NCBI GenBank assembly: GCA_965637545.1
Contig: OZ281499.1
Span: 14,198,001 to 14,262,000, forward strand
Reading direction: 5' to 3'
DNA length: 64,000 nt
DNA from: Phallusia mammillata
Lineage: Eukaryota
This document shows positions 22,109-22,606 of the stretch, one piece after another. Both the position numbers and the translations under genes were made by a program. Within the stretch, counting starts at the first letter, position 1. Every line of letters starts with the position of its first letter. The notes beneath the pieces were generated by a model. That model had not been told where the DNA came from and made no database searches. It saw nothing but the letters and a program-made list of their open reading frames with translations.

Positions 22109-22191
22109 CAGGGCATGATGACAACAAGACCATAGCAAGGGTGTGGCAATTGCTATTACCCGAAAATTCGCTAGGTCTCTCTGAGTCCCTG
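22109..22191 (+). ncRNA. Box C/D (snoRNA-like) hairpin module at the 3' end of element C
   Basis: CAGGG-c-ATGATGA (22115-22121) ... CTGA (22181-22184)-gt-CCCTG. Interior stems AGACCaTAGC/GCTAGGTCT and GGGTGTGGC/GCTAtTACCC. Confidence 0.62.
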
Positions 22192-22204
22192 CGGACAAAA
22201 AAAA

Positions 22205-22606
22205 ACCAAGCAAACAGCTCGCAAGTCAACCGGAGGCAAGGCGCCACGTAAGCAACTGGCCACCAAGGCCGCTCGCAAGAGCGCGCCGGCTACCGGGGGC
22301 GTGAAGAAGCCCCATCGGTACAGGCCAGGAACTGTGGCCCTCCGTGAGATCAGGCGTTACCAGAAGTCGACCGAGCTTCTCATCCGCAAGCTGCCCTTCC
22401 AGCGGCTGGTACGCGAGATCGCTCAGGACTTCAAGACCGACCTGCGCTTCCAGAGCAGCGCCGTGATGGCTCTGCAGGAGGCCAGCGAGGCCTACCTGGT
22501 CGGCCTCTTCGAGGACACCAACTTGTGCGCGATCCACGCCAAGCGCGTCACCATCATGCCAAAGGACATCCAGCTCGCACGCCGCATCCGCGGGGAGCGC
22601 GCGTAA
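22205..22606 (+). pseudogene. H3: Canonical histone H3 (H3.2 type) lacking promoter and first codons
   Basis: T3 to A135 identical to canonical H3 (A31, SAVM, S96); stop at 22606. Confidence 0.95.

Follow-up and report, generated by a model that had tools for sequence, protein, structure and literature searches.

The L1/Tx1-type LINE copy referred to here as element C (17742 to 22205, plus strand) ends in an 83-nt hairpin that bears the motifs of boxes C and D at its base, and this hairpin is probably a selected 3'-terminal kink-turn module on the RNA template, with either host Snu13/snoRNP or the element's own proteins as its ligand. A role for the module in 3' end formation or in recognition of the template by reverse transcriptase (RT), as an earlier note on this DNA had proposed, is a reasonable inference. 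Element C lies in a window of 64,000 nucleotides of Phallusia mammillata DNA, the whole stretch that was analyzed, and all coordinates refer to this window unless another contig is named.

The first 30 kb of the window is a histone gene cluster crowded with L1/Tx1-type LINEs, all of which are sense oriented, and two histone stem-loops were recognized in the window by Rfam. RT, zf-RVT, and endonuclease domains were detected by Pfam across the LINE families of the window. The carrier of the module is an L1/Tx1-clade target-specific LINE, with an APE-type endonuclease, RT, and zf-RVT across families and a recurrent target. Element C itself has Pfam matches to RVT_1 and zf-RVT, and both its 5' and its 3' junction could be read. 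Downstream lies its target, a histone H3 gene whose translation runs from codon 3 to the stop (22205 to 22606, plus strand). The tails of elements C and D adjoin H3 codons 3 to 4, and the tails of elements A and E adjoin the H4 start region. The window copy of C is defective: its ORF1 runs straight into the RT part of ORF2, the endonuclease region is absent, a stop lies between the RT and zf-RVT pieces, and the tblastn match of C with the ORF2 of D and F begins only at about residue 463. Because this copy is defective, conservation of the module is a property of the family and is no sign of activity of this copy. Element C is also flanked by a 146-bp direct repeat of H3 codons 4 to 52 (17596 to 17741 and 22208 to 22353, 100% identical), which may represent either a target-site duplication of nucleosome size or an H3 leader that the C RNA brought along. 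The A18 tail of D lies in the upstream repeat, 2 to 4 bp off the position at which the A9 tail of C meets the downstream H3, and thus nearly the same site is used by both families.

The C module occupies 22109 to 22191 of the plus strand, and its 83-nt hairpin is closed by a 5-bp terminal stem in which CAGGG (22109 to 22113) pairs with CCCTG (22187 to 22191). The 5' half of this stem is followed by a one-letter spacer, c (22114), box C (ATGATGA, 22115 to 22121), a CAACA linker (22122 to 22126), and the 5' strand of a 9-bp stem (AGACC-a-TAGC, 22127 to 22136), which has a bulged A at 22132. Folding pairs this strand with GCTAGGTCT (22170 to 22178), and the apical (inner) hairpin (22139 to 22161) lies between the two strands. 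Box D (CTGA, 22181 to 22184) is preceded by a U that is able to pair with the last A of box C and is followed by gt (22185 to 22186), the 3' half of the terminal stem, CGGAC, and the A9 tail at the target junction (22197 to 22205). From the first base of box C to the last base of box D the module spans 70 nt; upstream, the hexamer AATAAA (22096 to 22101) is separated from box C by 13 nt and from the terminal stem by 7 nt, and downstream the tail is 12 nt past box D and 5 nt past the terminal stem. The boxes, stems, linker, and hairpin are thus all present where the earlier note had placed them, and its distances (70 nt from box to box, 13 nt from AATAAA, and 12 nt to the tail) are correct. Either 2 unpaired nt separate box D from the stem or the bulge is of 2 nt rather than 3 nt, and because of these 2 nt between box D and the stem, the kink-turn of C is not canonical. 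The unconstrained minimum free energy (MFE) fold of C, calculated with an energy model that is unable to score kink-turns, pairs CAGGG with part of box D.

Element E ends in a module with the same boxes (GGC-aAT-GATGA...CTGA-GCC, 11560 to 11636, plus strand), in which box C is at 11564 to 11570, box D is at 11630 to 11633, a 13-bp bulged stem is formed by 11578 to 11591 and 11615 to 11627, and an A7 tail (11645 to 11651) stands 14 nt before the H4 ATG at 11666. Its kink-turn geometry is that of a textbook: GGC, a 3-nt bulge (AAU), and GAUGA, and on the opposite side CUGA abutting GCC. The geometry of C and E had been described as identical. This holds for the span from box C to box D, which is also 70 nt in E (11564 to 11633), but not for the remainder, since in E a distance of 18 nt separates AATAAA from box C, the tail follows box D at 11 nt, and the immediate terminal stem has only 3 bp. 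The interiors of the two modules cannot be aligned (2,141 of 5,000 shuffles align as well), and the RTs of C and E are only ~47 to 53% identical, both of which agree with the divergence that had been noted for the module interiors and for ORF2. C and E have in common their two boxes and the U that precedes box D, a short linker rich in A and C, a few flank letters, and a long stem that has one bulged base on the 5' strand and ends 2 nt before box D; an ungapped alignment of C with E leaves the inner stems out of register. The fold of the C module is better than that of its shuffles (MFE of -28.5 kcal/mol, z of -2.9), whereas the fold of the E module is not (z of -0.85), despite its 13-bp stem. 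No second copy of the C module was found in the window by blastn, and no SINE with a C module tail was seen there.

Both modules contain a box C that conforms to RUGAUGA and a box D that conforms to CUGA. Neither contains internal C' or D' boxes (C has no internal TGATGA or CTGA), the would-be guide region before box D of C is paired within the 9-bp stem, and no complementarity above that of shuffles was found between either module and the H3 and H4 genes on both strands. Since there are no C'/D' boxes, no free guide, and no complementarity to the histone targets above chance, the modules are C/D-type kink-turn hairpins and not methylation-guide snoRNAs. A search of Rfam with the C module gave no hit but noise at E values of up to 10, and the module of element E gave a weak end-to-end alignment with snoU25 (20.9 bits, E value of 0.034), for which the gathering score is 50. 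No tRNA-like part was found in either module.

The conservation of the C module was read from contigs of four public runs of the same species (two of DNA type and two probably of RNA) that have at least 80% likeness to 21000 to 22205. All module-containing contigs are free of indels, which fixes the 70-nt span, and the C-family copies keep the boxes, the stems, and the spacing. No contig has a listed change in CAGGG of the terminal stem or in box C. One common variant differs at 22145 (G to A, which turns a G-U pair into an A-U pair) and at 22149 (a loop base). A second family of contigs, present in both DNA runs, matches just 22108 to 22203, with 9 to 11 differences, and its sequence was derived from a table that lists only eight of these. 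All eight listed changes are at 22142 to 22163, within or next to the apical hairpin, which alone varies within the module. Both the main C copies and this divergent variant are free of listed changes at 22108 to 22141 and at 22164 to 22203, stretches that include the terminal stem, both boxes, the linker, and the 9-bp stem. With the listed substitutions, the apical hairpin of the variant still folds, in a shifted register.

The surroundings of the module in the divergent variant are different. Its upstream flank is ~75% identical to the 3' untranslated region (UTR) of C, with indels, and 6 of 2,000 shuffles align equally well; the flank aligns to 22065 to 22092 and skips the 15 nt that hold AATAAA, and the 30 nt before the variant's module contain no AATAAA. 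The tail of the variant is A7 to A8 and is followed by sequence other than H3, and this differing downstream flank indicates that the variant is a separate insertion. Based on contig depths only, its body is probably a sub-family that is 85% identical to C over 21000 to 21534, beyond which the UTR diverges by >20%. Contig depths also suggest that the C family has few copies, and its conservation is measured on about three sequence variants. Across these, the periphery of the module is kept while the flanking UTR diverges, which is the pattern of stringent-type LINEs.

The earlier claim of selection on an RNA module is strengthened by these contigs, in that C-family copies keep boxes, stems, and spacing and the listed changes of the variant with the diverged UTR fall only in the apical hairpin. 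Copies that end before the module, and boxes or a 70-nt span that vary freely, had been named as the observations that would speak against selection, and neither was seen in the contigs. The proposed link of the module to the poly(A) signal is not supported, since the variant has its module with no AATAAA in the preceding 30 nt. No C-family copy that ends at AATAAA was found among the contigs of the four runs. Contigs of the likely RNA runs include the C 3' UTR, and one contig of 2,695 nt, from a run whose size suggests RNA, passes through the module and 159 nt beyond it. This contig is compatible with read-through, though contigs cannot show RNA ends.

The RT tree arranges the Phallusia families as (C,(E,(D,F))); the supports are 96/90 and 100/99 (90/89 and 100/99 in a second tree), and the ORF2 proteins of D and F are 61 to 66% identical to that of E. 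At its 3' end, D has a small hairpin and an AATAAA that leads directly into A18 at H3 codon 4, family A ends in AATAAACAAAAA at H4 codon 6, and neither has the module. The earlier statement that B/F, A, and D lack the module therefore stands for A and D; F is truncated at 30093 but shares the 3' UTR of D, and element B has no recognizable 3' end within the window. Two related elements on metagenome contigs, L001 and L007, fall in a 100/99 clade with the Phallusia families and end in other terminal modules, which have a common G-rich motif and no boxes; the terminal module of L001 is a strong hairpin (z of -2.4), and that of L007 folds no better than shuffles. The module was found in none of the relatives recovered by protein searches of metagenome and Logan contigs (L001 to L005 and L007 to L012). 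The nearest proteins are "pol-like" proteins of P. mammillata that come from mRNA records, with no DNA on record; one is all but identical to D across the RT region, and another is 92% identical to C over 142 overlapping residues. A 21-mer that spans box C matched only a bacterial ABC-F gene in metagenomes, which we attribute to chance.

Among these relatives, L007 (6030 to 6253) and L008 (5800 to 5982), both ENA/JGI metagenome contigs, represent a near full-length LINE whose RT is 45 to 50% identical to that of C. This LINE is inserted at about codon 4 of H4, in L007 in the H4 gene of another organism, and has no terminal A-run; its end is a ~90-nt segment with the G-rich motif GGTGCGTGGGTGG that is present at the end of L001 too. 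The position of L007/L008 in H4 indicates that histone targeting extends beyond this genome, with a different 3' module. Another relative, on Logan contig L004, is an intact LINE (ORF1 of 404 amino acids and ORF2 of 1,143 amino acids) that stops at the contig end in AAATAAACAAAAACT (5160 to 5193), a terminus of the same kind as that of family A in the window.

The lack of the module in D/F, A, L001, and L007 would place the origin of the C/D module within the Phallusia clade, and since these elements do without it, the module is dispensable for histone targeting. Either the module had one origin and was lost in D/F or it had two origins, and the RT tree does not separate these; for a loss, it would suffice that the upstream AATAAA is used. 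Ahead of the module, C and E each have an AATAAA and an A-rich run that resemble the true termini of the module-less families. This likeness suggests that the module may have been added behind an older element end. As the UTRs of C and E that precede the module give just weak, T-rich matches to the termini of D and A, an appended module is something that we infer.

Our tentative preference is for a cis-acting 3' module to which a protein that recognizes kink-turns binds; the simplest candidate is host Snu13/15.5K, alone or together with Nop58, Nop56, and fibrillarin. When the 83-nt hairpin forms in the RNA, the two boxes at its base can adopt a box C/D-type kink-turn. This would recruit host Snu13/15.5K and possibly the other three proteins, and the resulting RNP would both mark and shield the template's 3' end at a point a few nucleotides upstream of the short A-run, where target-primed reverse transcription would start. 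The RNP may also retain the RNA in Cajal or histone locus bodies beside the histone-gene targets. If a histone promoter drives the element and transcription reads through into the histone gene, the 3' end of the template would be set by such a cap. The sequences themselves establish the motif, its position, its conservation among the C-family copies seen, and its recurrence in a second lineage (E); binding by protein, protection of the end, and localization are proposed. Snu13 is favored because what it reads are exactly the letters that two deeply diverged lineages have kept. A snoRNP cap is favored because there are precedents: snoRNP-bound C/D motifs stop exonucleases and define RNA ends, and snoRNA precursors gain short oligo(A) tails (PMC10557570, PMC12084880), while in trypanosomes the telomerase RNA, which is an RT template, binds NOP58 through a C/D domain (PMC10061497). 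A more far-reaching version, in which the retrotransposon took over the host pathway of box C/D snoRNP assembly to obtain a snoRNP-capped, exosome-protected template that is perhaps re-tailed and routed to nuclear bodies, is unlikely. Several points weigh against the preferred reading: the kink-turn of C is not canonical, its MFE fold draws part of box D into pairing with CAGGG, C'/D' boxes, an open guide, and an Rfam match for C are absent, D/F, A, L001, and L007 have no module, the conservation was read from about three variants, and the RNA also has to be translated, which is at odds with a nuclear snoRNP fate.

The module might instead be a 3' handle of the stringent type that is read by the LINE's own ORF2 or ORF1 protein, with the C/D likeness being incidental or reflecting a kink-turn of the element's own protein and with no snoRNP involved. 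This is somewhat unlikely but a serious possibility, because the module stands directly before the tail, as do the 3' stem-loops of stringent LINEs (PMC3747384), because the part that is kept extends beyond the boxes to the whole of the 9-bp and terminal stems, because the kink-turn of C is imperfect, and because the terminal modules of the relatives L001 and L007 are different ones that have a G-rich motif in common. Such a handle does not account for the presence of an exact RUGAUGA, a CUGA, and the U before box D among the few letters common to C and E or for the reproduction by E of the canonical host kink-turn layout, and D/F, the sister of E with ORF2 61 to 66% identical, needs no handle of this kind. 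Capture of a host C/D snoRNA-like passenger via 3' transduction or RT template switching, maybe twice (in C and in E), is a doubtful alternative. Capture would explain why the AATAAA and A-rich stretch before the modules resemble the termini of module-less relatives (AATAAACAAAAA in A, AATAAA plus A18 in D, and AAATAAACAAAAA in L004), as well as the patchy distribution on the RT tree and the two unrelated interiors, and both the retroposition of snoRNAs and the formation of chimeras by LINE machinery are known (PMC1687206; PMC13174262). However, in the known LINE chimeras the small RNA is at the 5' side, and these chimeras propagate no further (PMC13174262), and the modules have no Rfam snoRNA homologue, guide, or C'/D' boxes. 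The periphery of the module is unchanged while the adjoining UTR diverges, which is unlike a passenger, the remnant AATAAA is absent from the variant, and both modules span 70 nt. Moreover, capture accounts for the origin of the module and not for its present conservation.

Two further readings are less probable than those above. The module could be a structured spacer that folds away ~83 nt and thereby brings AAUAAA within the normal range of the cleavage site. The layout of C invites this reading, with AATAAA 7 nt before the terminal stem and the tail 5 nt after it, the layout of E is similar, and no other poly(A) signal was found in the 35 nt before either tail. We consider it improbable nonetheless, because the variant with no AATAAA in the 30 nt before its module is still A-tailed, because a spacer leaves the specific retention of boxes C and D unexplained, and because 159 nt of sequence follow the tail in the contig from a likely RNA run. 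As for a chance resemblance between two unrelated 3' UTRs, loose C/D-like motifs are indeed not rare, and 0.5 to 1.9 of them, according to the rule applied, are expected across a shuffled 64-kb window. Since such motifs are common window-wide, the signal lies in the position, the perfect boxes, and the shared geometry. When the last 150 nt of C and E were shuffled, a box C/D pair that lies just before the tail and is flanked by a stem of 3 bp or more arose in 28 (C) and 26 (E) of 200,000 shuffles, or ~1.4e-4 per end, yet the module is present at two of the four readable family 3' ends in the window. With the perfect boxes, the equal span, and the conservation among copies added to this, chance is extremely improbable. 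A relaxed motif scan of the window returned only C, E, and a site at 63448 to 63543 (CGATGA...CTGA with AACAC/GTGTT flanks, then A8), which lies in AT-rich DNA with no LINE context and which we take to be a chance occurrence.

The kink-turn module that we favor is similar in part to several known systems. In stringent-type LINEs, a structured RNA precedes the tail, and its structure is kept while its sequence drifts, presumably for template selection in target-primed reverse transcription (PMC3747384). In these LINEs (eel UnaL2, silkworm SART1/R1, the R2 3' UTR, and a monocot L1 lineage), the structure is directly before the tail, as it is in C, but their structures are simple hairpins read by their own RT, for which no box C/D kink-turn signatures have been described, whereas in C and E the boxes are among the few letters shared by two lineages. 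Like box C/D snoRNAs as defined by their K-turn (PMC10557570), the modules have RUGAUGA and CUGA joined by a terminal stem in ~85 nt, and E has the canonical 3-nt bulge and abutting stem. Unlike these snoRNAs, the modules have no C'/D' boxes, free guide, or Rfam family, and the geometry of C is off by 2 nt; in addition, the C and E modules are part of a ~4.5-kb LINE RNA, while box C/D snoRNAs are intron-derived small RNAs. The snoRNA retrocopies known as snoRTs and the chimeras of LINE-1 with small RNAs also consist of a snoRNA-like unit followed by an A-tail and are made by LINE machinery (PMC1687206; PMC13174262). However, snoRTs are stand-alone dead copies, and the chimeras have the small RNA 5' of a LINE fragment and are non-propagating, whereas the unit of C and E is the LINE's own 3' terminus and is inherited by copies. 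Telomerase RNAs (H/ACA in vertebrates and C/D in trypanosomatids) have a snoRNP-binding domain near their 3' end that serves in stability, processing, and trafficking (PMC10061497), but they are host genes with demonstrated protein binding, while C and E are mobile elements for which binding is predicted. In sno-lncRNAs and SPA lncRNAs, which are long Pol II transcripts, a terminal snoRNP halts exonucleases and thereby sets the RNA end (PMC12084880); these are host noncoding RNAs, and in SPAs the snoRNA caps the 5' end. Thus, structured LINE 3' ends (PMC3747384) and snoRNA retrocopies (PMC1687206) are known, and a C/D-type LINE 3' terminus is apparently undescribed. In the literature that we searched, the coverage of which is incomplete, we found no LINE with a box C/D-type 3' terminus, no retrotransposon counterpart of snoRNA-ended lncRNAs, and no paper on histone-targeting elements of Phallusia.

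To our knowledge, the definition of the template 3' end and the targeting by non-LTR elements that ride on host promoters have been detailed for only a few (R2, R1/SART1, and L2-type stem-loops). If the preferred reading is true, a host-type kink-turn that acts as a LINE terminal signal would be a new way of marking a template. It would also connect retrotransposition with the snoRNP/Cajal-body machinery located next to histone genes and would give mobile elements a counterpart of the snoRNA domains in telomerase RNAs.

Two other features of the LINEs in this cluster were observed. The long 3' UTR of D and F contains approximately four tandem copies of a ~60-nt T-rich unit (..ttttctattgtctttgtttac..) at 16900 to 17330 and at 29460 to 29840. 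Element B (4600 to 6082) has an ORF1 that is 72% identical to that of C; its leader (ATCAGTCTGACAGCAGC...) begins ~25 nt past a CCAAT/TATAAAAGG histone-type promoter and is also the leader with which element C starts.
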